64,000 bases of DNA from the IMG/VR virus record IMGVR_UViG_3300049215_000771, positions 1 through 64,000 of that record. One strand, written 5' to 3'. The notes beneath the pieces are model-generated. The model was not told where the DNA came from. It searched no databases and was given only the letters and a program-made list of their open reading frames with translations. Of the stretch, positions 871 to 49,047 are shown one piece after another; positions within the stretch are counted from its first letter, which is position 1, and the number at the start of each line of letters is the position of its first letter. A program made the translations under genes and the position numbers.

Positions 871-995
871 GTGGGGATAGTGTAACGGCAGCACGGGAAA
901 AACAGTCTCAGCGCCAATTTGTCCTACGGGAATGCTTAGTTGGGATTACATTCCATTCGGAGGACCAAGTGTAGGTTCAACTCCTACTCCCCACA
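871..995 (+). ncRNA. tRNA-scaffolded Y-RNA-like chimera, copy 1
   Basis: Acceptor GTGGGGA/TCCCCAC, D arm, T arm GTAGG-TTCAACT-CCTAC; anticodon arm replaced by AGTCTCAGCGCCAATTTG-TCC-TACG-GGA-ATGCTTAGTTGGGATTACAT. Confidence 0.75.
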
Positions 996-1018: not shown

Positions 1019-1450
1019 GTGAACGGGAAGAAGGCGAGTGTCAAACACCGCATCGAAACCACTAAGATCGCTGGACTCCCCTCGCCGATCAACCCCGTCC
1101 GCCAACATCGCCATCGTGGATCGAGCAAAGGTGGTGAAGGTTTGGAAAGAGCCAGGGCCAAGAAACGCAGGGATAAGATGAAGGAACTGGCGAGGTCTGA
1201 ATTCGCCTATACGGTCAAGGTGAAACTTCCCTACATGGGAATGGAAGACCCCCAAGAAGTTGTCGGCCATATCAACGAGATGGCTTGCCGGCTTCGCTTC
1301 ATTACTCACGAAGATCGTCGAGGGCGTTCTGTGATGGTGAGGGCCGAAATGACAGATGCTCGTGAAGTGTGGGCCAGGGTCGTCCCATCGGGTATGCTGC
1401 AAGGCCCGGAGAAATACTTGTGGGGCGGTTTGAACAGGGAAAAGTCTTGA
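1019..1450 (+). CDS. basic hypothetical protein
   Basis: 143 aa ORF, AAGGA RBS upstream. Confidence 0.55.
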   Translation: MNGKKASVKHRIETTKIAGLPSPINPVRQHRHRGSSKGGEGLERARAKKRRDKMKELARSEFAYTVKVKLPYMGMEDPQEVVGHINEMACRLRFITHEDRRGRSVMVRAEMTDAREVWARVVPSGMLQGPEKYLWGGLNREKS

Positions 1451-1507
1451 TGGTAAGACGCCGGCTTTGGAAGCTGGAGACTGCGGGTTCGACTCCCGCT
1501 TCCCTGA
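1435..1507 (+). tRNA. tRNA-Pro(TGG), atypical (A8)
   Basis: CAGGGAA/TTCCCTG acceptor; CCGGC-TTTGGAA-GCTGG. Confidence 0.8.
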
Positions 1508-1516
1508 CTGGCGTAT

Positions 1517-1591
1517 CGGGGTGTAGCTTAGTTTGGCTAAAGCGCATGGTTCGGGACCATGAGAGCGCAGGTTCGAGTCCTGTCACCCCGA
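1517..1591 (+). tRNA. tRNA-Pro(CGG)
   Basis: Cloverleaf; CATGG-TTCGGGA-CCATG. Confidence 0.93.
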
Positions 1592-1682
1592 CTCGGTTGT
1601 TGGCTTCAGTCTACGTCAGTAGTGCCTCCAACAATACAACAGATGAGGGCGGCTTTTTACCGGGATCATCTGACCGATTCTT

Positions 1683-1755
1683 CAGGGAGAAGTCTTGTTG
1701 GTAAGACGCCTCGTTCGGATCGAGGAGGGTGCGGGTTCAACTCCCGCCTCCCTGA
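1683..1755 (+). tRNA. tRNA-Pro(CGG), atypical (A8)
   Basis: CAGGGAG/CTCCCTG acceptor; CCTCG-TTCGGAT-CGAGG. Confidence 0.8.
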
Positions 1756-1785
1756 CTTGAAGCACCTGGCCTTGAGGGGTTAGTT

Positions 1786-2127
1786 ATGTCAGTGCTGGGC
1801 AAGGATGATAAAGGTCGAGTCTGGTTCAAGTCGGATTGGTATCTCTCCGACATCACTGAGGCAATCGACTTCAAGGTTACGAATGAAAGTTTCTTGTGGT
1901 CGAAGTGGTTCAAACTGGTAGCCACAGTGCCTTACAACAAGGAATTTCATGGCACGATGCGAAATTCCAACGGGTACGAGTATTCTCCCAAATACTACGA
2001 CCAAACCATCGGCTGGTACAAGTCGCTGCAACAGGCGTCGATGGCGCTGGAGAACTTGATGCCTTTGTTGGGGATTCATGAGATCAGCCCCATCGACGGT
2101 ATGCCTTACATGAGGAAGAATCAATAA
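1786..2127 (+). CDS. hypothetical protein
   Basis: 113 aa ORF with GAGGGG RBS, ends at next tRNA. Confidence 0.65.
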   Translation: MSVLGKDDKGRVWFKSDWYLSDITEAIDFKVTNESFLWSKWFKLVATVPYNKEFHGTMRNSNGYEYSPKYYDQTIGWYKSLQQASMALENLMPLLGIHEISPIDGMPYMRKNQ

Positions 2128-2202
2128 CAGGGTGTGGTCCAGCTTGGAGTGGACGCCAGGTCGGGAACCTGGAGATCGGTGGTTCAAATCCACCCACCCT
2201 GA
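2128..2202 (+). tRNA. tRNA-Pro(GGG), C33 variant
   Basis: CCAGG-TCGGGAA-CCTGG; T arm GGTGG-TTCAAAT-CCACC. Confidence 0.8.
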
Positions 2203-2209
2203 CTTGTAT

Positions 2210-2278
2210 TGCCGGGGTACTGGTGTACGGTTGTGGCTCTGAACCACGACTTGCGGGGTTCGACTCCCTGACCGGCAG
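2210..2278 (+). tRNA. tRNA-Gln(CTG), reduced D arm
   Basis: GTGG-CTCTGAA-CCAC; T loop TTCGACT. Confidence 0.7.
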
Positions 2279-2313
2279 CTTGCTTCGTAGGTGCGGGCTG
2301 GGACTCAAGGCGG

Positions 2314-3126
2314 TTGTGGAGTGAGGTCCAGTTCAGGAGCGGCCCGGATAAAATGGGGAAACCGGGACGAAGCAAATTTCAGGAGAGCGTCGTGTCCGAC
2401 AAGATTGGTTTTCCTGTCGGTTTGGCTGACGGCCTTATCAAAGAAGAAAAAGTCGCCCGCCGTCCCATCGTCGATTGGGACAAAGAAATTCCCGACATGG
2501 AAGAAGGTTGGGTCTACGCCCGACGTGGCAACAAGAAGGGAAAGCGACTTCGGAAGTTCCTTCAGCCAATGGCTGGTTACTACCGGGACGACAGCCCCCT
2601 CATCTGGATGCCAAGGGTCAACGATCTCGTGACTGCTGAGGCGAAGCGATGGAAGGCTTTGGAATACAGGGTCAGGGAGATCACACCACTGTTGAAAGTG
2701 TTTGAACTTGTTCGTGACAACGCCCCATTCTGCTGTGTCCATATCACGGACCACTGGCCGGAATGTACCTGGGTGAAATTCCCCCGTACCAGCGACGGTT
2801 CCTACGGCAACAGCATTGGTGTCTCATGGGATTGGGTGAAGGGCAAGGAAAAGCCCAACTTGCCACAAAAGCAAGATATTGGAGATGCCTGGTTCGCCTA
2901 TGAAAGCCGTTCGAGCGAAGTCAGGCGACGTGTTGGTTTGTTCGAGTCGTTGTTCCAGATGGCGCTGGAGAAACGATACGCCGATGAATTCTACAGACAC
3001 AGGGACCGCACGTTTCTTCGGAACCTGGTCATCAATGGGCGAACCTATCTTGTCGGCAGGAAGGAAGGCGGCGGATTTGGTGTCATCGCCTATCCAGAAG
3101 ACATCATTACGGAAGTCGTGAAATGA
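2314..3126 (+). CDS. hypothetical protein
   Basis: 270 aa ORF; start may be ATG 2353. Confidence 0.65.
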   Translation: MWSEVQFRSGPDKMGKPGRSKFQESVVSDKIGFPVGLADGLIKEEKVARRPIVDWDKEIPDMEEGWVYARRGNKKGKRLRKFLQPMAGYYRDDSPLIWMPRVNDLVTAEAKRWKALEYRVREITPLLKVFELVRDNAPFCCVHITDHWPECTWVKFPRTSDGSYGNSIGVSWDWVKGKEKPNLPQKQDIGDAWFAYESRSSEVRRRVGLFESLFQMALEKRYADEFYRHRDRTFLRNLVINGRTYLVGRKEGGGFGVIAYPEDIITEVVK

Positions 3127-3386
3127 TTATCGCTGGCGGTCGTTACAGAAGTGGTACTCGATACGCCCGTGAAGTAACATCCAAACACGAGCCGTTGCTC
3201 GAACAGTTGGGATGGAAGTTGAAAGATGGTGTGTGGCAAACGGACGATCAGAAGGTGGTGGATGAAACCTTGTCCAAAGGCATCTATTGCAGCCGGACGC
3301 ACTTGTTTTTCTTCTCCAGGGAGTATGTACAGAAAGCACTTCCCAACAGATGGAAGGTTGGACTCAACGAAATTCTCGGTCCATAG
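3123..3386 (+). CDS. hypothetical protein
   Basis: ATGA overlap with upstream gene. Confidence 0.55.
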   Translation: MIIAGGRYRSGTRYAREVTSKHEPLLEQLGWKLKDGVWQTDDQKVVDETLSKGIYCSRTHLFFFSREYVQKALPNRWKVGLNEILGP

Positions 3387-3449
3387 CTCAGTTGGCAGAG
3401 CATCACCCTGATAAGGTGGGGGTCGGTGGTTCAAGTCCACCTGGACCGA
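3377..3449 (+). tRNA. tRNA-Ile(GAT)
   Basis: Cloverleaf; TCACC-CTGATAA-GGTGG. Confidence 0.9.
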
Positions 3450-3474
3450 CTGGTAGTTGTTAGAGGCGTCCTCC

Positions 3475-3669
3475 AGTGTCCTGCGGGATAGACGCTTCGT
3501 AGCCAGGATGAGCGGCAGCTATCCGTCCATATGCCATGCGTATATGACGTTTCCAACCGTCACACCCTCCAGGTGCGGCACACGCCCCCTGTGGCGGTTG
3601 GGATTGGTTAGTCACGGAACAATCGCAAGGTCAAGGCCGTGCCAGGGTGACAAAACCCTGCTGGACACT
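3475..3669 (+). ncRNA. candidate structured ncRNA
   Basis: Closing stem AGTGTCC/GGACACT encloses GGATAG/CTATCC, TCCAACCGTCACA/TGTGGCGGTTGGGA, CACGG/CCGTG, CAGGGT/ACCCTG. Confidence 0.45.
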
Positions 3670-3721
3670 AACCGCTGGAAATATCTGAGACTTCTACTAT
3701 GATATGGTAGGAGTCTGCAAC

Positions 3722-4111
3722 ATGAACACCAGAGAGAAAGGCGAGTACGCCTGCATCAAGATTCAAGAGGAAGCACTTCTGCGGGGCTACATCATTAGTC
3801 GCCCGACGATGGAAGGTTCCCGATACGACATGATTCTGGACGATGGCGAGAAGCTACAGAAGGTCCAGGTCAAGTACGCAAATGCGGAAGGTGATGGAGT
3901 TACCTACGCAACGCTCTCAAAAAAGAGTGGCGGTAAAGCATACACCGCAAAGGAAGTGGACTTGTTGATGGTTTTCATCCCAAAACTCAACAAGATATGC
4001 GCCTTCGGCCCGGAGGTTTTTGCAGGTCGTACCAAACTATTCATCAGGTACGGCCCGCCGAGGAATGGGCAGAAGAAGGGATGTGTGAACGCTACGGATT
4101 ACTTCTGGTAA
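3722..4111 (+). CDS. PD-(D/E)XK endonuclease (group I intron/tRNA-associated family)
   Basis: KGEYA...RYDMILD...KVQVK...Y..KEVD..M pattern. Confidence 0.8.
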   Translation: MNTREKGEYACIKIQEEALLRGYIISRPTMEGSRYDMILDDGEKLQKVQVKYANAEGDGVTYATLSKKSGGKAYTAKEVDLLMVFIPKLNKICAFGPEVFAGRTKLFIRYGPPRNGQKKGCVNATDYFW

Positions 4112-4112
4112 T

Positions 4113-4187
4113 CGGGGTGTAGTTCAGCTTGGCTAGAACGCATGGCTGGGGGCCATGAAGTCGCAGGTTCAAATCCTGTCACCCCGA
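4113..4187 (+). tRNA. tRNA-Pro(GGG)
   Basis: Cloverleaf; CATGG-CTGGGGG-CCATG. Confidence 0.92.
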
Positions 4188-4200
4188 CTGTAGGGCTGAG

Positions 4201-4866
4201 ATGATGAAGAAGTGGAAGAAAAAGAAACAAAAGCAGAAGCAACACAAACAGCCCAAACGCCCTGCGGGATTTCACGAGGCTCTTGAAGGCCCGATGTATG
4301 TCCTGTACTTCGACGGCATGTGTTCTCCGGTGAACCCGCAAGGAATTTGCATCGGTTCATTCATCTTGTACGACACCCACGGCATCCAGGTGGGAAAAGG
4401 AAGAGAACTCATTTGTAGGGAGACGAACGAAGCTACGAACAATACTGGCGAGTGGGCAGCGCTGGTCCTGGGACTGCGATTTGCAAAAGACCTGGGTGTG
4501 AAGCGATTGGAAATTAACGGCGACTCGCAGATCGTTCTCGGTTCTCTCACAACCTTCAAGCGGCCTGCGGTTCACTTGCAGAAATGGAAAGACGAGGCTC
4601 ATTCCTTCTTGAGTGAGATCGAGTGGACTGCGAATCACATTCCGAGGGAGGATAACGCCGAAGCCGACGCCTTGGGCAACGAGTTGTACGAACAGATCAT
4701 TGTCTCTGAACCATTCGATGAGTCGAAGCTGGGAGACAATCACTGGTACAACAAACCTCCTACGGATAAGCAGCTTGCTTACCTGAAAAGGCTCGGATAC
4801 GATGGGGAGCCTCCGACAACAGGCAAGGAGGCGTCCGACCTGATTGGTAGTCTGAGATCAGCCTGA
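4201..4866 (+). CDS. rnhA: ribonuclease HI-like protein with C-terminal extra domain
   Basis: LYFDG...ATNNTGEW.AL..GL...GDSQIV...HIPREDNAEADAL; C-terminal PPTDKQLAYLKRLG domain. Confidence 0.85.
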   Translation: MMKKWKKKKQKQKQHKQPKRPAGFHEALEGPMYVLYFDGMCSPVNPQGICIGSFILYDTHGIQVGKGRELICRETNEATNNTGEWAALVLGLRFAKDLGVKRLEINGDSQIVLGSLTTFKRPAVHLQKWKDEAHSFLSEIEWTANHIPREDNAEADALGNELYEQIIVSEPFDESKLGDNHWYNKPPTDKQLAYLKRLGYDGEPPTTGKEASDLIGSLRSA

Positions 4867-4871
4867 CTAAT

Positions 4872-4970
4872 GCCGGCGAAGCCCGATTGGTAGGGCATCT
4901 TCTCTTCGCTATTTGTCCTTCGGGAATGATTGAAGGGATTACATTGTAGGTTCGACTCCTATCGCCGGCT
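4872..4970 (+). ncRNA. tRNA-scaffolded Y-RNA-like chimera, copy 2 (minimal)
   Basis: GCCGGCG/CGCCGGC acceptor, D and T arms; insert TCTCTTCG-CTATTTG-TCC-TTCG-GGA-ATGAT-TGAAGGGA-TTACAT. Confidence 0.72.
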
Positions 4971-4995
4971 CTCGCCTCACAGGAGAAAGTAGAGA

Positions 4996-5241
4996 ATGGA
5001 ATTTACCAACGATGAACTCATCGTCCTGCGACAACTGTTCCAGAAATGGGAACTGACCAACGGGCGCACGGTCGAAGAAGAAATTCTCAACATCGACTCG
5101 GCTCCCTATGTCGTGGGGTTCAAACCGGAGCCTGGTCAACATAGGCTGCCACGATCTGAGTGGGCAGAATTCGTCAAGAAACTGAAAGAAATCGTCAGGC
5201 CGACTGCCGAGCATCATTACGACATCGGCGGCGAGGGATAG
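4996..5241 (+). CDS. hypothetical protein
   Basis: AGGAG RBS. Confidence 0.6.
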   Translation: MEFTNDELIVLRQLFQKWELTNGRTVEEEILNIDSAPYVVGFKPEPGQHRLPRSEWAEFVKKLKEIVRPTAEHHYDIGGEG

Positions 5242-5243
5242 AT

Positions 5244-5318
5244 TCCGGGGCTGGGGTTGCTGGTAATCCCGTCTGCCTTTGAAGCAGAACTGCGAAGGTT
5301 CGATTCCTTCCCCCGGAG
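5244..5318 (+). tRNA. tRNA-Gln(TTG)
   Basis: TCTGC-CTTTGAA-GCAGA; TCCGGGG/CCCCGGA acceptor. Confidence 0.8.
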
Positions 5319-5450
5319 CTAAGAAGTTCCGAACCGGAATTGAACACGGCGGTCTTCTGTGTAGAATGTAAATCGAGGCCAACTGGTTTCCGACGTGGAA
5401 GTGGCTGTTGTCGAATAGTTTCGCAACACTTTTCACAAAGGAGAACGCAG

Positions 5451-5825
5451 ATGGTTGAGATTTACAATGTTGGAACGGATGTGCCTTACGACCTGCCGGA
5501 TCAGGATGATCGGTTTGAGTGGCTGGTGTACTGGTACGAGGATGGAGGTTACGACGGCAACGGGGAATGTGTCGGCTACAACAAGGAAGATGGTATGCTG
5601 TACACGAAGAACCTGGGCCACTGCTCGTGTTATGGACCGTTCGACGGTTGGGGAACTGACTGCACGAAAGTCACGCCGCACGAGTTCTTCCGGGAAAAGG
5701 ACTCGATCTTCGATCCTGATAACATGGATGTCATCAAGAAGAAGGTCGCAGAACTGATCCCTTGGGCCGTCCCTTCGGGGCCGGTCTTCAAGGATAAGTT
5801 CAACTTGCTCGGAGAAGCGAAGTAA
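5451..5825 (+). CDS. hypothetical phage protein (HCSCYGP motif)
   Basis: AAGGAG RBS; acidic/aromatic phage-type ORF. Confidence 0.7.
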   Translation: MVEIYNVGTDVPYDLPDQDDRFEWLVYWYEDGGYDGNGECVGYNKEDGMLYTKNLGHCSCYGPFDGWGTDCTKVTPHEFFREKDSIFDPDNMDVIKKKVAELIPWAVPSGPVFKDKFNLLGEAK

Positions 5826-5930
5826 CGATTCGGCGGTCCTAGACTGGCGTGGAAGTGGCCCTTCGGGGCCACGCCACACGATTCGGCGGTCCTAGACTGG
5901 CGTGGAAGTGGCCCTTCGGGGCCACGCCAC
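5825..5930 (+). repeat. perfect 2 x 53-bp tandem repeat with a TTCG hairpin
   Basis: ACGATTCGGCGGTCCTAGACTGGCGTGGAAGTGGCCCTTCGGGGCCACGCCAC twice. Confidence 0.9.
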
Positions 5931-5984
5931 AAATCCTACGGGTTATTCTAGGTTACACCCGTAGCTGTTTTGCGAGACATCAAC

Positions 5985-6221
5985 ATGATGAACGGGCCGG
6001 ATTACAGCGACAACTGCCCCGATTGTGGGGAACCGCTGGCAGTACACCGGGGAGTGGTCCCCCTGACTGCTACAAGGTACTGTGCGAGTTGTAACTGGTG
6101 CGAAGTCACTGACGGCGACCGCCAGGCCAACGCCAGGGAAGATTGGTACGTTCGGAATGTGCGAAACAGGGAAGACAACAAGATCGTCATGGATGAAGAC
6201 GATGAATATGATGGTGGGTAG
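5985..6221 (+). CDS. Zn-ribbon hypothetical protein
   Basis: CPDC...CASC. Confidence 0.55.
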   Translation: MMNGPDYSDNCPDCGEPLAVHRGVVPLTATRYCASCNWCEVTDGDRQANAREDWYVRNVRNREDNKIVMDEDDEYDGG

Positions 6222-6336
6222 CTCAGTGGTAGAGCGACGTAAAAAGTCTCAGCGCCAATTTGTCCTTCGGGAATGCTTAGTTGGGATTACATGCCATTTA
6301 AGCCGTAGGTCGCAGGTTCAACTCCTGCCCCACCAG
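6212..6336 (+). ncRNA. tRNA-scaffolded Y-RNA-like chimera, copy 3
   Basis: TGGTGGG/CCCACCA acceptor, TAGCTCAGTGGTAGAGC D arm, GCAGG-TTCAACT-CCTGC T arm; same ~50-nt core as copy 1. Confidence 0.75.
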
Positions 6337-6338
6337 CT

Positions 6339-6875
6339 ATGACAAACATGCTTGATGCACACGACACACACTGCTGTCTGGAACACGGTTGCAAGTACGG
6401 CGATGAAGATTGCCCGGTTGCAACAGGTGTTAGGAAACAACAAGGGCTGTGCGAACAATGTGGCCTCGAAACTGAAGGCTACTACGGCGCAGCCGAGCGG
6501 ACCCGTGAAGAACAAGAAGCCTACTTGAATTTCTTGTGGGAAGACATGCACTTCCGTCCCGCTCGCCAGGTCGAGAAGGTTCACTGCCTGGTCTGCGACA
6601 AGGAACTGGAGTACGAGCCAGGACCAAATCACACCGGCAACGTAATGGACGCCGGCTTCATGTTGGTAAGTTTCCATTACGGCAGCCGACACGACCAGTG
6701 CCACGGCTACCACGGCAGGAAGACGATGAGGGGGAAAGACAACCCCATGCACGATCTCCTGGCGTGTGATGAGATCGAAGCCTTCATCTGTGACGATTGC
6801 TTCGAGAAGAAGTTCAACAAGATGAAGGGCTACGACATCCGACAGGAACGGACGAGAACGAAAAAGTTCAACTAA
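6339..6875 (+). CDS. Cys/His-rich hypothetical protein
   Basis: HCCLEHGCKYG.EDCPV and further CxxC pairs. Confidence 0.7.
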   Translation: MTNMLDAHDTHCCLEHGCKYGDEDCPVATGVRKQQGLCEQCGLETEGYYGAAERTREEQEAYLNFLWEDMHFRPARQVEKVHCLVCDKELEYEPGPNHTGNVMDAGFMLVSFHYGSRHDQCHGYHGRKTMRGKDNPMHDLLACDEIEAFICDDCFEKKFNKMKGYDIRQERTRTKKFN

Positions 6876-6882
6876 CAACATT

Positions 6883-6959
6883 CAGGGATTAGCTCAGTTT
6901 GGTTTCAGAGCGCCTGCCTTGGGAGCAGGAGGTCGGAGGTTCAAATCCTCTATCCCTGA
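6883..6959 (+). tRNA. tRNA-Pro(TGG)
   Basis: Cloverleaf; CCTGC-CTTGGGA-GCAGG. Confidence 0.92.
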
Positions 6960-6976
6960 CTACGGAGGGTCGCCCC

Positions 6977-7468
6977 ATGAAGAAGACAAAGAAGGACAAG
7001 TTGAAGGTCGGCTGGACCGACAAGTGGACAGGAGAGAAGAAGGTGGAACCAACCACTCTCTACCTCGACTACCACGAGTCCCGGAGCGGCGGTGAAATCT
7101 GCGAGGGCCAGGAGAACGATCCGTGGCCGAGCCACGAAGATGAGTTTACCGAATGGTCCCCGAACCGCCTGCACAAGACTGGCGATAAGGCTCAGTGGCA
7201 GCGGGAAGCAATTCAGGTTGACTTCGACCCGCTTGTTGGCCAAGATGTATGGCTGGTGGTTGTTCGGTACTACACTGGTTGTACCTTCGGGCGCACCTGT
7301 GGATGCTGGAGCATCATCGGCGTGTACGAACACCAAGGCCAGGCTGAGAAGGTCCGGGCCGGTATCAACGACGACAGCTTCATGCCGTCCTGCGGCTACA
7401 AGTGTTGGATCGGATATTTCGAGGGACTGGAAGACGTGGAGGTTCACCGCATGACGGTGGAAGCGTGA
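6977..7468 (+). CDS. hypothetical phage protein
   Basis: GGAGG RBS; V.Y.TG.TFG...W.GYFE motif common in phage ORFs. Confidence 0.7.
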   Translation: MKKTKKDKLKVGWTDKWTGEKKVEPTTLYLDYHESRSGGEICEGQENDPWPSHEDEFTEWSPNRLHKTGDKAQWQREAIQVDFDPLVGQDVWLVVVRYYTGCTFGRTCGCWSIIGVYEHQGQAEKVRAGINDDSFMPSCGYKCWIGYFEGLEDVEVHRMTVEA

Positions 7469-7872
7469 TGGGACGAGAAAACCAACTCGAAATCCTTCGA
7501 GAAACTATGCTCAGGGTAGCGGCGGCGGAAACGTCCTGCTATCCTGAAGTATATGATAAAGAAAAATCTCCACTCGACGGGCACTGCGGCGCTGTGTCAG
7601 CGATGGTACAAGGCGTATTTGGTGGTGATATTGTGACCGGCAAGGTCAACGGCGTCACCCACTACTGGAATCGGTTCGATGACGGCGTAGAAGTCGATCT
7701 CACATCATGTCAGTTTGGCGGTGATGGATATACACCACTGAAGAAAGGCCGGAAGGTCAAGCCCAGGACCGGGCCGCTTCCTTTGCGATTTATTGTGTTC
7801 GCTGATAAGGTAAATAAAGCCTTGTCGAAGCCGGTCAGGAAGATGCACAAAAAGCAAGAAGGTCGAGAGTAA
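7468..7872 (+). CDS. YunG-like (papain/transglutaminase-fold) protein
   Basis: GHCGAVSAMVQ..FGGDI....HYWNR....EVDLT..QF. Confidence 0.65.
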   Translation: MGRENQLEILRETMLRVAAAETSCYPEVYDKEKSPLDGHCGAVSAMVQGVFGGDIVTGKVNGVTHYWNRFDDGVEVDLTSCQFGGDGYTPLKKGRKVKPRTGPLPLRFIVFADKVNKALSKPVRKMHKKQEGRE

Positions 7873-7946
7873 GGGGGCGTAGCTCAACTGGTTAGAGCGC
7901 CAGCCTGTCACGCTGGAGGTTGCGGGTTCGAGTCCCGTCGCTCTCG
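7873..7946 (+). tRNA. tRNA-Asp(GTC)
   Basis: Cloverleaf; CCAGC-CTGTCAC-GCTGG. Confidence 0.93.
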
Positions 7947-7960
7947 CTCCGTTTCTTTGC

Positions 7961-7989
7961 TTTACAATCCCAAAGTAACGTGGTATCAT
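7961..7989 (+). promoter_or_regulatory. sigma70-type promoter
   Basis: TTTACA-N17-TATCAT. Confidence 0.55.
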
Positions 7990-8063
7990 GGGGTCATAGC
8001 TCAATTTGGGAGAGCGCCTGCCTTGCACGCAGGAGGTTACGAGTTCGAGTCTCGTTGGCTCCA
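7990..8063 (+). tRNA. tRNA-Ala(TGC)
   Basis: Cloverleaf with G3:U70; CCTGC-CTTGCAC-GCAGG. Confidence 0.93.
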
Positions 8064-8065
8064 CT

Positions 8066-8248
8066 ATGAAAGAAACAGCCGAACTCATTATCGAGCAGGC
8101 GAAGAAGATCGAGGCATATGAGGAAGCCTTGGCGACAATCTTGTTCAATGTCCTGCGAACCAATGATTCCTTCTTGAAGTTTTGCGTCAAGAACGAGATT
8201 GAGCGGGTGTGTCCCAGGGCTGTCGAAAAAGCGGAACAAATGCTGTGA
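8066..8248 (+). CDS. hypothetical protein
   Basis: Short helical ORF in the gene chain. Confidence 0.5.
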   Translation: MKETAELIIEQAKKIEAYEEALATILFNVLRTNDSFLKFCVKNEIERVCPRAVEKAEQML

Positions 8249-8520
8249 GACGACAACGCCGCCAACATCCTGATGGCTCGATCTGCGAGGAAGGCATTCG
8301 TAATGTCCCAAGGGGCTGGAAGCCTTGCTGCGAATCTCTCAAGTACCGTGTGAAAGCCTGCATCTACGATGTTCGCATTCAGTGGTTCAGCAAGGCGAAA
8401 TGTTGGGGCGTCCGACTGACGGACGGAACCAGCGCCTTCATCACGATTCACTACTGTCCATTCTGTGGGACGGCACTGGAGCCAGCCAGCACGGGGGACG
8501 GGAGAGGGATTGAGGTATGA
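8245..8520 (+). CDS. Cys-rich hypothetical protein
   Basis: CC...I.YCPFCG.L. Confidence 0.6.
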   Translation: MRRQRRQHPDGSICEEGIRNVPRGWKPCCESLKYRVKACIYDVRIQWFSKAKCWGVRLTDGTSAFITIHYCPFCGTALEPASTGDGRGIEV

Positions 8521-8819
8521 GCGACTTCAGCTACTTCAAAGGCTTCCCCAAACTTCCCAACCGGGACAAGGGCGATCTGCCGAACCTCCCGATTCGATGG
8601 CGGCTCTCGACGGACGCCTTCGGTGTTGATGCTGAAGATATTCCTCAGCAACAGGCCGAGAAGTTGTTGGAGCAAGCTGGTCTGAAGCATATGTTGGTTT
8701 TGGTGTTGCTCCAGGTTGGCGGTCGCCAAAGTGGAAGCATCAAAATCGACGATGACAAGACCAGGACCACGAAGTTTCTGCACTACGGCCCGAAGGAGAG
8801 AAAATGCTCGTCGGTGTAG
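8517..8819 (+). CDS. hypothetical protein
   Basis: ATGA coupling, GAGG RBS. Confidence 0.55.
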
Positions 8820-9277
8820 TGATGGGATCGCAGTCGGATTGGGAGACAATGAAGGGGGCGACCGAGATATTGGATATGCTCGTCATTCCCTACGAAGCCA
8901 AGGTGGTGTCGGCACACAGGACGCCTGACCTGATGTTTCAATATGCGGAGAGGGCTGAAGGAAGGTTGGATGCCATTATCGCCGGGGCAGGAGGAGCAGC
9001 CCATTTGCCTGGGATGCTGGCCTCAAAAACACAAGTGCCTGTCTACGGCGTGCCGGTTCAATCGAAAGCCTTCAATGGCCTGGATTCGCTGTTGTCGATT
9101 GTGCAGATGCCCGCTGGTGTTGGAGTAGCGACGTTCGCTGTGGGCCATGTTGGAGCAAGGAATGCGGCGCTGCATGTGGCACAATGGTTGGCGAAGTTCG
9201 ATGACAGGATCGCCGTGAAGTTGAGGAATTTTCGGGCCAACCAGATGGAAATGGTGTTGAGGGCGAAGTTGGAGTGA
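8804..9277 (+). CDS. purE: N5-carboxyaminoimidazole ribonucleotide mutase
   Basis: VMGSQSDW...VSAHRTP...[13 protein letters not shown]...[13 protein letters not shown]. Confidence 0.96.
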
Positions 9278-9489
9278 TGATGGTTGTTGTGTTGCGGTGG
9301 TATTACGATGGAAGGGACGGAACACCGATCCTTCCTGAATTGTCTGGAGTGTTTGGGCCGTTTCCTGACCGTGCGGCAGCGAACAAGTGGATCAGCACTG
9401 CATCGACATGGGGTGGTTGGGGCGAGTACAAATACCAGGTTGAAGACCTACATACACCCGTGGTGGAAGATGAAGCAGGCTCGACTTAA
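9274..9489 (+). CDS. hypothetical protein
   Basis: Coupled to purE stop. Confidence 0.5.
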
Positions 9490-9676
9490 CATCCTGGATT
9501 ATATGTCGCCGGTCAACGCCTTGGAGTTTGTCAGAATTCTTCACGAACACAAGGATGCGAAAGGAGTTGTCAAGATCGACCTGGGGCATGGGATGATTGT
9601 GGATTGTCAACTTGATGGTAAGTTCAATCCGCCACGGTCGATTGATTCGCCGCCAACGCCGGAAGACGAACGATAG
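9470..9676 (+). CDS. hypothetical protein
   Basis: Short ORF before tRNA-Ala. Confidence 0.5.
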   Translation: MKQARLNILDYMSPVNALEFVRILHEHKDAKGVVKIDLGHGMIVDCQLDGKFNPPRSIDSPPTPEDER

Positions 9677-9680
9677 TAAT

Positions 9681-9752
9681 GGGGTCATGGTGAAATTGGG
9701 ATCACGCTAGAATGGCATTCTGGAATTCGGGGTTCGAGTCCCCGTGGCTCCA
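9681..9752 (+). tRNA. tRNA-Ala(GGC)
   Basis: G3:U70; CTAGA-ATGGCAT-TCTGG. Confidence 0.88.
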
Positions 9753-9753
9753 C

Positions 9754-9903
9754 TGGATCAAACCGGCCCCGGAAGGGGCTAACTCGCAGGGCGTAGTCCC
9801 GTGCAAGTTCTCGTAGCCAACAGCGCAAGTTGTTGGACTGGACCCTAGCGGGGGCTGTAATGGTTGTCAGTCACCCACCCTGGAGAACCATCAAGTTGAT
9901 CCA
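9754..9903 (+). ncRNA. candidate structured ncRNA between tRNAs
   Basis: TGGATCAA/TTGATCCA closing stem; GGCCCC-GGAA-GGGGCT, CCAACAGC-GCAA-GTTGTTGG, GTTCTC/GAGAAC. Confidence 0.5.
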
Positions 9904-9911
9904 ATTTGTTC

Positions 9912-9985
<74 letters not shown>

Positions 9986-10004
9986 CTGCGGGCATTTGGT
10001 GAGC

Positions 10005-10075
10005 GGGCATTTGGTGAAAGGGTATCACGCTACTATGACACGGTAGAATACCAGGTTCGAGTCCTGGACTGCCCA
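10005..10075 (+). tRNA. tRNA-Val(GAC), second variant
   Basis: CTACT-ATGACAC-GGTAG; 15-bp duplication GCGGGCATTTGGTGA at 9988-10017. Confidence 0.8.
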
Positions 10076-10087
10076 CTGGAGAAAGCG

Positions 10088-10312
10088 ATGATGTACTACA
10101 GCTACAAGAAAACCATCCGAACGACTTCAACCAGGCCCGAAGGCGAGGTTGAAGAATTGGTGATCGAGCAATGCACCGGCCCGGAGGCGAAAGCCAAGAT
10201 GGAAGAAGCCGACAAGATAACGGAAGGTGCCGAGAAGAAGATGGAACAAACCTTCGCCAAGATGGATCGCTTCTTCAACAAAATGAGTGAAGCCTTCAAG
10301 GAACTGTGGTGA
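10088..10312 (+). CDS. hypothetical protein
   Basis: GGAG RBS. Confidence 0.55.
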   Translation: MMYYSYKKTIRTTSTRPEGEVEELVIEQCTGPEAKAKMEEADKITEGAEKKMEQTFAKMDRFFNKMSEAFKELW

Positions 10313-10472
10313 TGGTTTTCGGGCATGTTATTGCTGGCGCAGGGTTGTTTCTCCTGGTTTTGAACAGGCTGGGGTCGAAGTGGGATGACCCTGTGGCAAA
10401 TAGCCAAGCGTTCAAGATTGGATTGGGCATGTTTGGTATTGGTGAGACATTGGCCTGGGGAATTTACACGCT

Positions 10473-10543
10473 GGGGTCATGGTGAAATGGGATCACACCT
10501 GGTTCGCAATCAGGAATTCGGGGTTCAAATCCCCGTGGCTCCA
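10473..10543 (+). tRNA. tRNA-Ala(CGC)
   Basis: G3:U70; CCTGG-TTCGCAA-TCAGG. Confidence 0.9.
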
Positions 10544-10553
10544 CTGACAAACG

Positions 10554-10979
10554 ATGGCCTTGAGGGTTAGTACGATGGATGCCCCTGTGACCGAAGTTGT
10601 GTCGGCTCCCGTTGAGCCTGCGAAACGTCATCCGAGTGCGCTGGCTCCGCTGGCGGCTTTCAACGACCAGAAAACGCTGCTGAAGTTCTACCCGCAGGAA
10701 GATGGTTCCTGCCTGGTGGTCTTCTGGTGCCCCGGCTGTAAAGAAACCCACACCTACAAGGTGGGAACCTTCATGGGCGTCGGCGAGTGGGGCTTCATGA
10801 AGGACAAGCCGGTGAGGATGGACGGCTGGAAGTTCAACTGTGATCTCGAACATCCGACCTTCAGCCCGTCGCTCAAATACGACAAGTGCCATCTGTGGGT
10901 CGAGAATGGCGTCATCGACTATGGATACGACTGCGACCACAAGCTGAAGGGCAAGAAAGTGCCCCTGGAACTGTTCTGA
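10554..10979 (+). CDS. DUF6527-like Cys/His protein
   Basis: FWCPGC...W.FN.D...PTFSPSL...CH..V.NG.I.Y..DC.H.L.G. Confidence 0.7.
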   Translation: MALRVSTMDAPVTEVVSAPVEPAKRHPSALAPLAAFNDQKTLLKFYPQEDGSCLVVFWCPGCKETHTYKVGTFMGVGEWGFMKDKPVRMDGWKFNCDLEHPTFSPSLKYDKCHLWVENGVIDYGYDCDHKLKGKKVPLELF

Positions 10980-11593
10980 TGCTTCCCGATAAGCTGAACC
11001 TATATTTCGACGGATCGTGCGGGCCTAACAACCCAGGCGGCACGGCAGGATATGCGTGGCGACTGGTGGACCCCGATACCGGCAAAGTATTGGCCCAGGA
11101 CTGCGGCGAAGTATGCCGAGGCCCAACGGCGACGAACAATATCGGCGAGTGGGGCGCTGTCAAGGCGGGGCTGGAACACCTTGCCGAGAAGGGCTGGAAG
11201 GGAGAACTCAATATCCGAGGCGACAGCCAGTTGGTGATATACCAGCTAATCGGCAAGTATAAATGTCGCAAAGACACATTGATTCCCTTCTACGAGGCGT
11301 GTATGCTTATCTTGGAAGGCTGGACGTGGGACGCTCACTGGATTCCAAGGGAGCAAAACGATGAATGCGACCGAATGTCCAAGCAAGCCTACGCCCCTGG
11401 CAGACGAGGCACAGGAGATATACAACGACCTGTGGAACGATTGCAAAGAGATTCGGGAGATCATGGAGGAGTACGGTCTGAGTTGGTCGGACGTGGCAAG
11501 AAGTCTCGAAGAACACGGGCCACACAGCGGAATGGACCTGGACAAACCCAACCGCTGCCGGGTGAGGAGACGCCAGAAGTGGCGTTCGATTGA
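10979..11593 (+). CDS. rnhA: ribonuclease HI-like protein (second paralogue)
   Basis: LYFDGSC...ATNNIGEW...GDSQLVIYQL.G.YK...WIPREQNDECD. Confidence 0.88.
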   Translation: MLPDKLNLYFDGSCGPNNPGGTAGYAWRLVDPDTGKVLAQDCGEVCRGPTATNNIGEWGAVKAGLEHLAEKGWKGELNIRGDSQLVIYQLIGKYKCRKDTLIPFYEACMLILEGWTWDAHWIPREQNDECDRMSKQAYAPGRRGTGDIQRPVERLQRDSGDHGGVRSELVGRGKKSRRTRATQRNGPGQTQPLPGEETPEVAFD

Positions 11594-11600
11594 TGACTGA
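11361..11600 (+). CDS. RSIDD-tagged hypothetical protein
   Basis: Ends RRRQKWRSIDD*; overlaps the RNase H tail in another frame. Confidence 0.6.
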   Translation: MNATECPSKPTPLADEAQEIYNDLWNDCKEIREIMEEYGLSWSDVARSLEEHGPHSGMDLDKPNRCRVRRRQKWRSIDD

Positions 11601-11901
11601 ACAGGAACATGATGCCAGCCTGGGTCGTATGATACGACATTTCGCCAGGTTTCACGGCGGGGCGATCCTGACGTGTTTTATTCTGATCTGTTTCTTCGGC
11701 GATGGCCAGAAAACAGGACACTGGATCATGTGGACTAGCGTAGGCTGCGGGGCGGTAATCACCTATCTGTTGTGGAGAAGCGACAGAAGGCGTCGGAAGG
11801 AAGAAGAAATGTCCGGTGGGTGTGACGGAAGCACAAGGGTCTACGAAGCCCTTAGAACAGGTTCGACTCCTGTACCGGATACTGAAAGGAAAGATGGTTG
11901 A
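11593..11901 (+). CDS. membrane hypothetical protein
   Basis: Two hydrophobic segments; reads through tRNA-Arg. Confidence 0.5.
   Translation: MTEQEHDASLGRMIRHFARFHGGAILTCFILICFFGDGQKTGHWIMWTSVGCGAVITYLLWRSDRRRRKEEEMSGGCDGSTRVYEALRTGSTPVPDTERKDG
11811..11881 (+). tRNA. tRNA-Arg(ACG)
   Basis: AGGGT-CTACGAA-GCCCT; T loop TTCGACT. Confidence 0.85.
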
Positions 11902-12097
11902 CTACAACTACCCTTTCGTTTGCCCTCACTGCGGTAGCAAATGGTCGGCGGCTGAGTTTCTGGAGGAGCATATCTGGTATGACCACCAGGATGTAACGAA
12001 GGCTGAGATCGCCGATTGGTTCGCCAAGGAGTACAACCTCGATCCTGACGAAGTAAGCCAGGAAGATGTTGACCGGGAGTGGGAAGGTCGAGGATGA
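11894..12097 (+). CDS. C2H2 zinc-finger-like protein
   Basis: FVCPHCG......LEEHIWYDH. Confidence 0.6.
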   Translation: MVDYNYPFVCPHCGSKWSAAEFLEEHIWYDHQDVTKAEIADWFAKEYNLDPDEVSQEDVDREWEGRG

Positions 12098-12351
12098 AAC
12101 TTTTCTGCGTCAGTTGTTTGATTCGGAACACCAGACAGGCCATGTCTGGTTACATCTTCGCTGACGATGAAGAAGAAGCCCGGAAGATATTTCGACAATA
12201 CCTTCCAGTTGAACATGACATCGTGGTAGACGAGATCGAACAGGAGAAGGGTCTGCTGACGATGGTGACGAACGACCGGGCGGTACTGTTGAAGTATTAC
12301 CCGAAAACAACCGATAGGTGTACTGGAGGCACACAGCCCTGCGAAGGCTGA
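12094..12351 (+). CDS. hypothetical protein
   Basis: ATGA coupling. Confidence 0.5.
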   Translation: MKLFCVSCLIRNTRQAMSGYIFADDEEEARKIFRQYLPVEHDIVVDEIEQEKGLLTMVTNDRAVLLKYYPKTTDRCTGGTQPCEG

Positions 12352-12379
12352 GGAGCGGGTTCGACTCCCGCATCGGTTA
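12309..12379 (+). tRNA. tRNA-Arg(GCG)
   Basis: CAGCC-CTGCGAA-GGCTG; AACCGAT/ATCGGTT acceptor. Confidence 0.82.
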
Positions 12380-12380
12380 C

Positions 12381-12468
12381 TGCGACCAAATGCCAGAAGG
12401 GATTACATTCATTTGATAAGTGAAATGCTGGCCTAGCCAGCTAGTCTCTTCACCAGTTGTTGGTCGCA
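12381..12468 (+). ncRNA. free-standing Y-RNA-like element A (no tRNA body)
   Basis: TGCGACCAA/TTGGTCGCA terminal stem; ATGCCA-GAAGGGA-TTACAT...AG-TCTCTTC-ACCAGTTG; T-run follows. Confidence 0.7.
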
Positions 12469-12492
12469 ATTTTCCAACACGGGGCCGGAACA

Positions 12493-12834
12493 GTGGCGGT
12501 TAAAAGGAAAACGGTCGAATGTGAGTGTGGCGAAGTTTTCAACGACCTGCGCACTCATCTCCTGGGCAACCTAATCTTTGGTCCCTGGAAGGCCAAAACG
12601 CATCGTGTGAGGGAAACAAAGTCCAAAAGCGGTGGCGATATACTTGTCGCCGTGTGGGAACGAACAGTAGAATGTGGGAAGTGCGGCGGCGAACTGCTGA
12701 AGGAAAAACGACAGTACGAGTTGTCACCACCAGCAGATGTGACAAAACCAGAACCAATCAGCTACTACAGCAGTAGGGAGTTGATTGTCCGAGGGTCCGA
12801 GGGAGCAGATGGAATAATTCGGATGACGGCGTAG
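12493..12834 (+). CDS. Zn-ribbon hypothetical protein
   Basis: VECECGE...VECGKCG; start uncertain. Confidence 0.5.
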   Translation: MAVKRKTVECECGEVFNDLRTHLLGNLIFGPWKAKTHRVRETKSKSGGDILVAVWERTVECGKCGGELLKEKRQYELSPPADVTKPEPISYYSSRELIVRGSEGADGIIRMTA

Positions 12835-12844
12835 ATAGATTGAT

Positions 12845-12915
12845 GCCCGGTGGGTGTGACGGAAGCACGCAGCGCCTCGAACGCTGTAGAACGGGTTCGA
12901 CTCCTGTACCGGGTG
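12845..12915 (+). tRNA. tRNA-Arg(TCG), C33 variant
   Basis: CAGCG-CCTCGAA-CGCTG. Confidence 0.8.
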
Positions 12916-12988
12916 CTAAAGGTCGAGCATTTAAGTTCCTACGAGTAATCGTAGGCAGACTCTTTCTCGACCTTGAATCAGCGAGTGT

Positions 12989-13078
12989 ATTGTGGTCCAA
13001 ATGCTAAGGTGGGATTACATCTTTTCCAACAAGAAGAAGCCGAAAGGCAGTCTCATCACCAATTTGTTGGACCACAAT
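12989..13078 (+). ncRNA. free-standing Y-RNA-like element B (no tRNA body)
   Basis: ATTGTGGTCCAA/TTGGACCACAAT terminal stem; ATGCTAA-GGTGGGA-TTACAT...GCC-GAAA-GGC-AG-TCTCATC-ACCAATTTG; T-run follows. Confidence 0.72.
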
Positions 13079-13105
13079 TTTTCAACATGAAAGGTAGTGT
13101 GCTAT

Positions 13106-13183
13106 ATGGCTAAAGAAAAATCTCCGAAGAAGGAAAAAAAGAAGCCGAAGAAGAAGGACAAGGACAAGAAGCCGAGCAAGTAA
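13106..13183 (+). CDS. 25-aa Lys-rich peptide
   Basis: MAKEKSPKKEKKKPKKKDKDKKPSK*; AAGG upstream; stop abuts the next tRNA. Confidence 0.55.
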   Translation: MAKEKSPKKEKKKPKKKDKDKKPSK

Positions 13184-13277
13184 GCCCTTGTAGCTCAATT
13201 GGTAGAGCATCTGACTCTTGTGCTAGAAAGCACCCAAGTTAATCAGAGGGTTCAGGGTTCGAGTCCCTGCGAGGGCA
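13184..13277 (+). tRNA. tRNA-Lys(CTT) (or Asn GTT) with 21-nt insertion in the anticodon loop
   Basis: Normal acceptor, D and T arms; TCTGA-CTCTT[GTGCTAGAAAGCACCCAAGTT]AA-TCAGA; A73 favours Lys. Confidence 0.75.
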
Positions 13278-13279
13278 CT

Positions 13280-13707
13280 GCGAAGGAGAACTGGCGTTAC
13301 CTTAACCATCAGGGAGGCTGTTCGATTGTACTTCGCTGTCACAAAACCTCACGCTTCGGCAATGGGGGACAATGCTCGTGTAGCGAAGAAGGCGTAAGCC
13401 CACTGGAAACGGTGAGAGTCCCGTAGCTGTCCATGCTAATGGTCATGGAGAAATTCAGTAGTCCTTGGTCGGAAATCAAGGATGATGCTAGTTGGCGGGG
13501 TGACGGCCCACCAAGGCTGGACCGCATGGACCGGCACATGCAGCTTCGGCGAAGAAATTGTGTCGCCACGAGAGCTAATCGACAATCTCTGGACAAGGCC
13601 CATTCAGGGCGCAAGCCTATCTTCGGATGGCGAGTGTACTCTGACCCGTAGGGATGAAGCGGACTCCTGCCCCGGACTGATTCCGCAGAGAGGGGCCGAT
13701 TAGCAAT
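13280..13707 (+). ncRNA. candidate large structured ncRNA (~430 nt)
   Basis: No convincing ORF; many tetraloop hairpins (GGC-GTAA-GCC, CACTG-GAAA-CGGTG, TCCTTGGT/ATCAAGGA, GGC-GCAA-GCC, TATC-TTCG-GATG). Confidence 0.5.
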
Positions 13708-14779: not shown

Positions 14780-14904
14780 GGCCGGGTAGTGTAACGGTAG
14801 CACGGGTAAAAGCAGTCTCAGCGCCAATTTGTCCTACGGGAATGCTTAGTTGGGATTACATCCATTACCAGGACCAAGTACAGGTTCAATTCCTGTCCCG
14901 GCCT
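14780..14904 (+). ncRNA. tRNA-scaffolded Y-RNA-like chimera, copy 4
   Basis: GGCCGGG/CCCGGCC acceptor, D and T arms; core identical to copy 1. Confidence 0.75.
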
Positions 14905-25614: not shown

Positions 25615-25716
25615 GGGCGGGTAGCTCAGTGGCAGAGCGGCGATGACGCTGGACGGTTTTATAGTTGCCGGTTGCAGCTAATCGCAAGGTCGCTGGTTCA
25701 AATCCAGCCCCGCCCA
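25615..25716 (+). ncRNA. tRNA-like RNA with extended anticodon arm
   Basis: GGGCGGG/CCCGCCC, canonical D and T arms; GCGAT..ATCGC encloses ~36 nt instead of 7. Confidence 0.65.
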
Positions 25717-27216: not shown

Positions 27217-27314
27217 GGGAGCGTGGTGTAAAGGTAGCACACGAGACTTATAATCTCGGCCAAACGGTAGCGCCTGATTAGCGCTAGGTGAGGGTTCAAG
27301 TCCTTCCGCTCCTA
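27217..27314 (+). tRNA. tRNA-Ile(TAT) with oversized variable region
   Basis: CGAGA-CTTATAA-TCTCG; ~31-nt variable region with TAGCGC/GCGCTA hairpin. Confidence 0.75.
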
Positions 27315-29700: not shown

Positions 29701-30159
29701 ATGCGAAGAAAGAAACAACCTGAGAAACCCAAGCGGCCCAAGCAGGAAAAGCGCTGGCTCTCGCTATCGAAGCTGGAGGGTGTGCGTTGGATATGGGCTG
29801 ACAATTGGTGGGATTGGGTGTTGTCGGGGGTTGTCGAATATCAAGGCAAGCGGTACTATGCTGTTTGTGTTGATGAAAACTACGACAAGCGGTACAAGTG
29901 GTTCCGGCGCTATCTGATGGTAGATTTGCCGGAAGATGTGTGGAAAGACGAACTGGAGAGGCACGCTTTCTTTGTTGAGAAGGTTGGCAGTCACTTCGAG
30001 TTTGACGTAGAGCGTCAATGTCGGAAAGGCCCGGAGAAGTACCTGAAAGATTCTCGGACCTGGCATGAGTTCTACGAAAGGTATCCCAGCCCGACGCAGG
30101 GCGGGGAAGTGCGGGACTACAAGCAATACCCGCACATTGGCTGGTTTGAGAACGACTAA
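29701..30159 (+). CDS. hypothetical protein
   Basis: 152 aa aromatic-rich ORF. Confidence 0.6.
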   Translation: MRRKKQPEKPKRPKQEKRWLSLSKLEGVRWIWADNWWDWVLSGVVEYQGKRYYAVCVDENYDKRYKWFRRYLMVDLPEDVWKDELERHAFFVEKVGSHFEFDVERQCRKGPEKYLKDSRTWHEFYERYPSPTQGGEVRDYKQYPHIGWFEND

Positions 30160-34773: not shown

Positions 34774-34888
34774 CGGTAGCACAACGGTCCTCTGAAAAGG
34801 GATAGTCTCGACACTATTTGTCCTTCGGGAATGCCGTTGGGATTACATTCATAATCCGTGTGTCCTGGTTCGAGTCCAGGCGAGGCGA
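34759..34888 (+). ncRNA. tRNA-scaffolded Y-RNA-like chimera, copy 5
   Basis: GCCTCG/CGAGGC acceptor, D and T arms; AGTCTCGAC-ACTATTTG-TCC-TTCG-GGA-ATGCC-GTTGGGA-TTACAT; residual TTCATAA-TCCGT. Confidence 0.75.
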
Positions 34889-48548: not shown

Positions 48549-48577
48549 GTTCCCTTTTACTCAGGAGGTCTTAGACC

Positions 48578-48988: not shown

Positions 48989-49015
48989 GCTGCATGTCAC
49001 CTAGCCCTTCCCCAA

Positions 49016-49047
49016 ACCCCGGCTGTTGCGAGCAGCCGGGGTTCTTT
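49016..49047 (+). terminator. rho-independent terminator
   Basis: AACCCCGGCTG..CAGCCGGGGTT-CTTT. Confidence 0.6.

Follow-up and report, generated by a model that had tools for sequence, protein, structure and literature searches.

Ro60 and its Y RNAs constitute a conserved RNA-surveillance system, whose function in bacteria and phages is poorly understood. In known Y RNAs, the ends form a conserved helix that docks on the outside of the Ro60 ring, and the apical module gates the ring or tethers it to an exoribonuclease, for instance PNPase (PMC4201824). Y RNA-like RNAs that are encoded by a phage and bound by its Ro60 are documented (PMC4201824; PMC12135203), and in vitro complexes with host PNPase have been obtained for a phage Ro60 and its two Yrl RNAs (PMC12135203). 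Here we describe two free-standing elements, A (12381-12468) and B (12989-13078), located in the first 64 kb of the 532,729-bp IMG/VR viral contig IMGVR_UViG_3300049215_000771 (this 64-kb stretch is referred to as the window). We consider it likely, from sequence and predicted fold, that both are small Y RNA genes of the bacterial and phage Yrl family, in a minimal, YrlB-like form.

YrlA (RF02553; crystal structure 6cu1) has been likened to a circularly permuted tRNA whose acceptor stem is closed (bioRxiv 10.1101/312249). Its consensus runs from the 5′ Ro-binding strand through the inner stem, CUAC, a T arm, the closed acceptor stem and a D arm back to the inner stem and the 3′ Ro-binding strand. 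The stem, internal loop and inner stem of YrlA (GNCGAAUGC ... G-G-A-(C/U)-U-A-C ... UUGUC) are those of A and B, which do not have the T arm, closed acceptor stem and D arm. The connectivity of A and B is thus that of the YrlA consensus minus its tRNA-like part. As they have no tRNA-like domain, A and B are classed as YrlB-like minimal Y RNAs. YrlB (RF02565; the second Rsr-bound RNA of Salmonella Typhimurium), Mycobacterium smegmatis YrlB and Deinococcus radiodurans Yrn2 are likewise small, with ends that form the Ro-binding stem. YrlB and the small second Y RNAs also have no complete tRNA-like domain, and YrlB, like A and B, shares its genome with a tRNA-like Y RNA. The apical part of YrlB is a single long hairpin with a pyrimidine-rich loop, whereas A and B have a three-way junction with two hairpins. 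YrlB is located in an rsr operon, whereas A and B are 19-20 kb away from Ro60, within a phage tRNA array.

The Thermus phage phiLo RNAs Yrl1 and Yrl2 (PDB 9l5y) are, like A and B, encoded by a phage with its own Ro60 and show a stem-bulge-stem build with a CGAA-type motif (PMC12135203). They lie directly upstream of Ro60 and their binding has been shown experimentally, whereas A and B resemble them in build and their binding is predicted. Metazoan Y RNAs are also no longer than about 100 nt and have a bulged, Ro60-recognised helix at their ends and a variable apical module (PMC4201824; PMC12135203). They differ from A and B in transcription by RNA polymerase III, the La-binding U tail and the GGUCCGA motif, and there is no detectable sequence homology. 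Minimal Y RNAs of Ro60-encoding phages are a known kind of RNA, to which A and B are added.

Structure of elements A and B

Elements A and B share one predicted fold (Table 1). The internal loop that follows the terminal stem has AUGC(C/U)A in its 5′ half and ACCA(G/A)UU(U)G in its 3′ half; beyond it are a 9-bp inner stem (NNNGGGAUU / AGUCUCNNN), ACAU and two hairpins. The inner stem pairs GAAGGGAUU with AGUCUCUUC in A and GGUGGGAUU with AGUCUCAUC in B. The two copies differ by five compensatory double changes, of which the terminal stem has four and the inner stem one, and by a single one-sided change; no pair is broken, which argues for selection at the RNA level. A first-pass annotation of the window, made from the sequence alone, had placed both elements and their terminal stems of 9 and 12 bp exactly. 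It had also claimed that the inner stem covaries; the stem is real, extends to 9 bp and carries one of the double changes. The single short hairpin that it put in place of a tRNA body is instead a pair of hairpins on a three-way junction. No T or D arm is found in 12405-12442 or 13017-13048. The apical domain of A has no T-loop or D-loop motif and gives no tRNA-like match in tRNA and Rfam scans.

Table 1. Positions of elements A and B, of the tRNA-shaped genes and of Ro60 in the window
Feature	Position	Strand	Remarks
Element A, Y RNA-like, free-standing	12381-12468	+	88 nt; fold z -5.36; R2 39.8 bits, E 8.6e-9
A, terminal stem, 5′ strand UGCGACCAA	12381-12389	+	pairs with 12460-12468, 9 bp; aligns to family consensus ggGcCGAAUGC
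A, variant Ro-binding motif GACCAAAUG	begins in 12381-12389, extends into loop	+	
A, internal loop, 5′ side, AUGCCA	12390-12395	+	A8, U9 and G10 invariant, C11 nearly so, in 47 aligned elements
A, inner stem, 5′ strand GAAGGGAUU	12396-12404	+	pairs with 12443-12451; helix covaries over 150 relatives
A, conserved ACAU	12405-12408	+	directly 3′ of the 5′ strand of the inner stem
A, apical domain	12408-12441	+	hairpins 12408-12424 and 12427-12441, three-way junction; minimum free energy (MFE) structure = centroid structure
A, inner stem, 3′ strand AGUCUCUUC	12443-12451	+	
A, internal loop, 3′ side ACCAGUUG	12452-12459	+	aligns to family consensus ..CCUUG
A, terminal stem, 3′ strand UUGGUCGCA	12460-12468	+	followed by A and UUUU (12470-12473); flank common with B
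Element B, Y RNA-like, free-standing	12989-13078	+	90 nt; fold z -4.57; R2 38.5 bits, E 2.1e-8
B, terminal stem	12989-13000 / 13067-13078	+	12 bp
B, internal loop, 5′ side, AUGCUAA	13001-13007	+	
B, inner stem	13008-13016 / 13049-13057	+	9 bp
B, apical hairpins	13020-13037 and 13039-13048	+	the latter GAAA-capped
B, internal loop, 3′ side ACCAAUUUG	13058-13066	+	
B, U-run	13078-13082	+	
tRNA-shaped gene	871-994	+	core 904-951 replaces anticodon arm; gene ends approximate
tRNA-shaped gene	4872-4969	+	core 4899-4944 directly replaces anticodon arm and variable loop; MFE structure has acceptor, D, T and module arms
tRNA-shaped gene	6212-6336	+	embedded core 6245-6292; gene ends approximate
tRNA-shaped gene	14780-14904	+	embedded core 14814-14861; gene ends approximate
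tRNA-shaped gene	34759-34888	+	embedded core 34804-34848; 816 nt 3′ of Ro60 stop; Rfam tRNA with long insertion, 39.2 bits
Ro60/Rsr ortholog, presumed protein partner	32078-33943	+	621 aa; Pfam, PDB sequence match and fold match

The Ro60 protein

The open reading frame (ORF) assigned to Ro60 matches Pfam vWA_Ro60 (1.4e-13) and, by sequence, D. radiodurans Rsr (PDB 2nvo, 3.8e-18). Pfam TROVE scores 16.7 bits, which is under the cut-off; TROVE passes in the two closest relatives. An AlphaFold model of the protein was built with 32 homologues, leaving out the row of the protein from Myxococcus phage Mx1, and has a pLDDT of 78 and a pTM of 0.80. The best 13 fold matches of the model in the PDB are all Ro60/Rsr proteins (E 1e-17 to 2.5e-13, approximately 560-600 columns), among them the human, Xenopus, Deinococcus and Thermus phage phiLo Ro60; the next match is at 1e-2. 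With this full-length ortholog on the same strand of the window, the defining protein partner of Y RNAs is present.

Relatives beside Ro60 genes

Relatives were fetched by Ro60 protein and comprise one viral locus and 80 metagenomic loci (metagenomic Ro60 41-46% identical). A pairing script identified 131 elements of the same build in them, 52 minimal (57-93 nt) and 79 of the YrlA type, the latter with T arm, closed acceptor stem and D arm. YrlA-type and minimal elements share arrays beside Ro60. A covariance model, R2, was made from 45 minimal elements that adjoin Ro60 in other contigs and contains no window sequence; another model, R1, contained the window copies and for this reason is not used as evidence. 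The window was scanned with R2 on both strands with the filter off. A and B are both recovered (Table 1), B aligning with no non-standard pair, and the next match has 15 bits.

Over 83 sources (960 kb), R2 gives 236 matches at E <= 1e-3, all on the strand of Ro60. Among the best 150 of the 236, 129 are downstream of Ro60, at a median distance of 227 nt, and 14 are upstream. These 150 fall in 67 of 82 loci, and the first element 3′ of the Ro60 stop is the minimal form in 46 of 60 loci. In the same best 150 matches, 93.6% of cells are paired, compared to 31-58% with the partners slid by 1-3 columns, 14 of 16 pairs show double changes and the covariation score is 0.654 against at most 0.113; both helices are supported, but the alignment was fitted to the structure of the model, so these counts are biased towards that structure, a caution to be read with those below. 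The apical hairpins of A and B are not conserved over the relatives.

Some long array members reach the Rfam YrlA gathering score (e.g. L196:11530-11641, 77.1 vs 69 bits) and are matched by R2 too, which ties the family to the described Y RNA-like RNAs. In the closest viral relative (Ro60 42% identical), a 58-nt element (L118:9909-9966) precedes Ro60 by 35 nt; its core is the same and its GUCGAAUG motif is perfect.

B gives a full-model match to Rfam YrlB (E 0.0034 in an 851-nt search), with the blocks AAUGCU, GGAUUACAU and AUUUGU in common and in the same order. Rfam YrlB is a narrow family, and BLASTN with YrlB gave orthologs only in other Salmonella serovars (PMC4201824). Element A has no YrlB match in the Rfam scans. 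The first-pass annotation had called the two elements minimal Y RNAs with a different effector domain. The Ro60 ortholog, the YrlB match, R2 and the motif support the first half of this statement; the second is descriptive only, the apical hairpins being unconserved.

Several observations weigh against the assignment of A and B to Y RNAs. The YrlB match of B scores 27.5 bits, and the curated gathering threshold is 97. A matches YrlA with 18.2 bits (E 0.66; threshold 69), and since this match vanishes in a 95-nt Rfam scan it carries little weight. By curated criteria, A and B are not members of Rfam YrlA or YrlB. The Ro-binding motif reads GACCAAAUG in the 9-bp stem of A and GUCCAAAUG in the 12-bp stem of B; the published GNCGAAN0-1G is off by one base in both (CAAAUG for CGAAUG), so the likeness to GNCGAA(N)G proposed in the first pass falls one base short of an exact match. 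The A in place of G in CGAA is offset by a U on the 3′ strand, forming an A:U pair, a variant that occurs in only 4 of the 150 relatives (e.g. L190 and L202:7813-7872). A and B are located 19.0-19.6 kb upstream of Ro60, on the same strand, compared to the median of 227 nt in the relatives, and characterised Y RNA examples are within a few kb of Ro60 (PMC4201824). Copies dispersed over more than 10 kb are also found in the Ro60-encoding viral contig L202. No promoter was detected adjoining A or B, and a terminator scan of the + strand from 11700 to 13400 calls the 3′ end of neither.

The 3′ ends also bear on a different explanation, in which A and B are decayed YrlA-type remnants that have lost the tRNA-like domain and are now mere terminators or processing hairpins with no role for Ro60. 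Both elements are followed by AA and 4-5 U, and they share a 3′ flank of 11-12 nt, AATTTT(T)C(C)AAC, that occurs nowhere else in the window. The short U-runs and this flank would suit a terminator, and decay would suit the distance from Ro60 and the altered CGAA motif. However, the unpaired AUGC, ACAU and CCARUUUG, which a terminator does not need, are kept between the copies and in distant Ro60-adjacent relatives, and every pair is retained despite the five double changes. An intrinsic terminator was taken as a short-loop GC-rich hairpin with a U-tract of at least 5 nt directly after it; the structured RNA enclosed by the closing stems of A and B measures 70 and 66 nt and the U-runs have 4-5 nt, so neither qualifies and neither is called. 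The T-runs of the first-pass annotation are short, 4 and 5 T preceded by AA. The minimal build is the commonest first neighbour of Ro60 (46 of the 60 loci), which indicates a maintained class rather than decay. We regard the decay explanation as improbable and retain the assignment to minimal Y RNAs.

The shared flank was also considered as a family feature and rejected, as it is present in only 4 of 150 relatives; the relatives show a mild T-enrichment 3′ of the closing stem.

Other large viral contigs resemble the window. L202 (IMGVR_UViG_3300034782_000062; 1223-12696) and L200 (1511-2327) encode Ro60, many tRNAs and 6-10 Y RNA-like elements; L202 has 23 tRNAs in 14 kb and, like the window, has its Y RNA-like elements dispersed, here across more than 10 kb. 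Myxococcus phage Mx1 (L116, OR576727.2) is the nearest annotated phage (Ro60 39.8% identical). Regular-expression scans of Mx1 with the exact motifs of the window found no copy. Rfam and R2 find diverged, unannotated YrlA-like elements in its tRNA array (the Mx1 features reported are 8255-8383, 8607-8710 and 9732-10109), the first of which is located between two tRNA-like genes with spacers of 3 nt and 1 nt. The transfer-messenger RNA (tmRNA) of Mx1 (117.7 bits) overlaps a short coding sequence annotated as 'Hef-like endonuclease'. In two related loci, a fluoride riboswitch is found a few hundred nucleotides 3′ of the Ro60/Y RNA array (L188:12121-12184 and L162:3352-3414).

The same core in tRNA-shaped genes

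Five further genes of the window carry the core of A and B within a tRNA shape (Table 1). Each combines D and T arms with an open acceptor stem of 7 bp, and has the module in place of or inside the anticodon arm. ARAGORN detects none of the five and Rfam names only 34759-34888 a tRNA. The order in these genes is AGUCUCNNN, CCAAUUUG, a 3-4-bp hairpin with a UACG or UUCG cap, GAAUGC, NNNGGGAUU and ACAU. In the free copies the half that ends with GGGATTACAT comes first and the half that begins with AGTCTC last; the five embedded copies have the opposite order. The 10-mer GGGATTACAT has seven exact copies in the window, all on the + strand, with approximately 0.06 expected for that strand from base composition. 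When the halves of the free copies are swapped, 36-43 of 45-48 positions match the embedded modules, compared to 20-28 in the native order, and shuffles score far lower. The swapped alignment and the chance estimate confirm that free and embedded modules are related by circular permutation, as the first-pass annotation had it when it reported the reversed order of the halves. A consensus fold of the embedded modules together with two from other contigs has the same two helices.

The first pass had taken the free form as the permuted one. The two connectivities stand, but it is the free form that has the canonical Y RNA topology and the embedded form that is permuted with respect to YrlA. The embedded copies have an open acceptor stem, and a UNCG tetraloop closes their Ro-binding stem; in YrlA the connectivity is the other way round. 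Judged on their sequence and predicted fold, the embedded genes are the un-permuted, tRNA-topology counterpart of YrlA. No description of a Y RNA arranged in tRNA topology was found within the literature searched. The module in tRNA topology, within the same genome as A and B, is a more unusual and novel feature than A and B themselves.

Seven copies on one strand, in two topologies, might also be expected of an autonomous module unrelated to Ro60, either a small self-cleaving ribozyme or a DNA repeat resembling a miniature inverted-repeat transposable element (MITE), since the terminal stems are inverted repeats in the DNA. No Rfam ribozyme family is matched, even at E up to 10. The terminal repeats differ between the copies yet remain complementary, which indicates selection on RNA pairing rather than on a transposase site. 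The family is, moreover, tied to Ro60 genes and to their strand. An autonomous module of this kind is very hard to credit beside a Ro60-linked RNA.

A search with a 20-base pattern of the embedded form matched only the source contig, IMGVR_UViG_3300049215_000771. A looser 14-base pattern (AATG, gap, GGGATTACAT) gave 113 stretches over viral contigs, of which 4 passed the pairing filter and none had the remaining module; these matches are ascribed to chance. Two metagenomic contigs with related Ro60 genes show the same tRNA-topology arrangement (L119:2470-2584 and L124:11480-11640), in the order D arm, AAAA, AGUCUC.., ..CUUG, capped hairpin, AAUG.., ..GGAUUACAU. The copy in L119 is located just 3′ of Ro60 and is interrupted by the end of the contig. 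Beside the module in three of the embedded genes of the window are mini hairpins (952-964, 14862-14872 and 34787-34799), each with a 2-3-bp stem and a 7-nt loop with U as second base (AUUCGGA, AUUACCA and CUGAAAA). Read by eye, they look like residual anticodon loops.

Genomic setting and proposed role

The window contains 38 tRNA genes in a dense array, all on one strand, with small ORFs and several aminoacyl-tRNA synthetase genes interspersed among them. The 5′ end of A is 1-2 nt past tRNA-Arg(GCG), which ends at 12379 according to Rfam and at 12380 according to ARAGORN. The spacer from tRNA-Arg(UCG) to B is 72 nt long and includes a stable hairpin. A tRNA end is found within 13 nt upstream in only 11 of 150 relatives, so coupling of 5′ end formation to a tRNA would be occasional and not the rule.

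A and B would be transcribed on the + strand within the tRNA array. The 5′ end of A would probably arise from 3′ processing of the abutting tRNA-Arg, and the 3′ ends of A and B from the terminal stem and the short U-run or from further processing. The paired ends and the internal loop (CAA|AUGC vs CCARUUUG|UUG) are predicted to be the docking site for the ring of the phage's own Ro60. Once bound, the RNA may regulate Ro60, either as a gate for other RNAs that enter the ring or as a tether between Ro60 and a host exoribonuclease. Discrete transcripts of A and B, their binding to Ro60 and the downstream effect are inferred by homology to the described systems. As the apical hairpins are unconserved, we regard A and B as occupying or gating Ro60, and not as recruiting a specific effector. 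This role is the weakest part of the proposal.

Genuine Y RNAs could instead be aimed at host factors, as a decoy or sponge for host Rsr, PNPase or another RNA-decay or defence nuclease, and not at the phage Ro60. The in vitro complexes of phage Ro60 and Yrl RNAs with host PNPase (PMC12135203) are in keeping with such a target, and the altered base in CGAA could reflect a different partner. The phage, however, has a Ro60 of its own, and module and Ro60 co-occur at 67 of the 82 loci. We think a host target unlikely, and favour docking to the Ro60 of the phage.

A tentative proposal, which we would put somewhat short of even chances, is that the phage keeps one Ro60-binding module in two natural connectivities, two canonical minimal Y RNAs and five Y RNAs of tRNA topology. 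If the tRNA-topology genes were matured like a tRNA, by RNase P, RNase Z and CCA addition, they would be a natural 'un-permuted YrlA'. They would then be direct evidence for an origin of YrlA from a tRNA in which the anticodon arm turned into a Ro60 site, and would offer a way to couple Ro60 to tRNA-handling enzymes during infection. The free copies would be the stripped version, which only occupies or gates Ro60. The presence of both connectivities in one genome offers a natural experiment on the parts needed for Ro60 binding and bears on the proposed tRNA origin of YrlA.

A and B enlarge the class of small Y RNAs below the curated Rfam thresholds, a class that, with more than 40 metagenomic loci, is the most frequent first neighbour of Ro60. 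A single 64-kb block contains Ro60, seven or more Y-type RNA genes and an extensive set of tRNAs and aminoacyl-tRNA synthetases, which suggests that the Ro60 system is part of the translation and tRNA toolkit of the phage.

Other features of the window

A nucleotide search of annotated phages with the window gave a tRNA of mycobacteriophage Myrna as the sole match. The hairpin in the spacer before B (12919-12974, + strand, 56 nt) has an outer stem of 9 bp, an inner stem of 7 bp and a GUAA loop (z -4.26); its initial 19 nt are similar to 12084-12102. Four tRNA genes on the + strand are over-long, with 82-102 nt (13184-13277, 25615-25716, 27217-27314 and 55504-55585). They have insertions in the anticodon loop or a long extra arm, and ARAGORN gives 4-base anticodons for two of them. 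These may be small introns or unusual tRNAs.

Two paralogous RNase H-like ORFs (Pfam RVT_3 / RNase_H) are located within the tRNA array on the + strand (4201-4866 and 10886-11593). The aminoacyl-tRNA synthetase cluster comprises ORFs at 30065-31063, 37029-39797, 46690-47694, 48529-50442, 53253-55010, 60043-60660 and 61700-62425. The types represented are class I Ile/Val/Leu, Glu/Gln, MetRS, a class II core and a short AlaRS-like ORF. A HisRS-like fragment of 205 aa is followed, after approximately 1 kb, by an HNH endonuclease ORF, a hint that the gene has been split or invaded.

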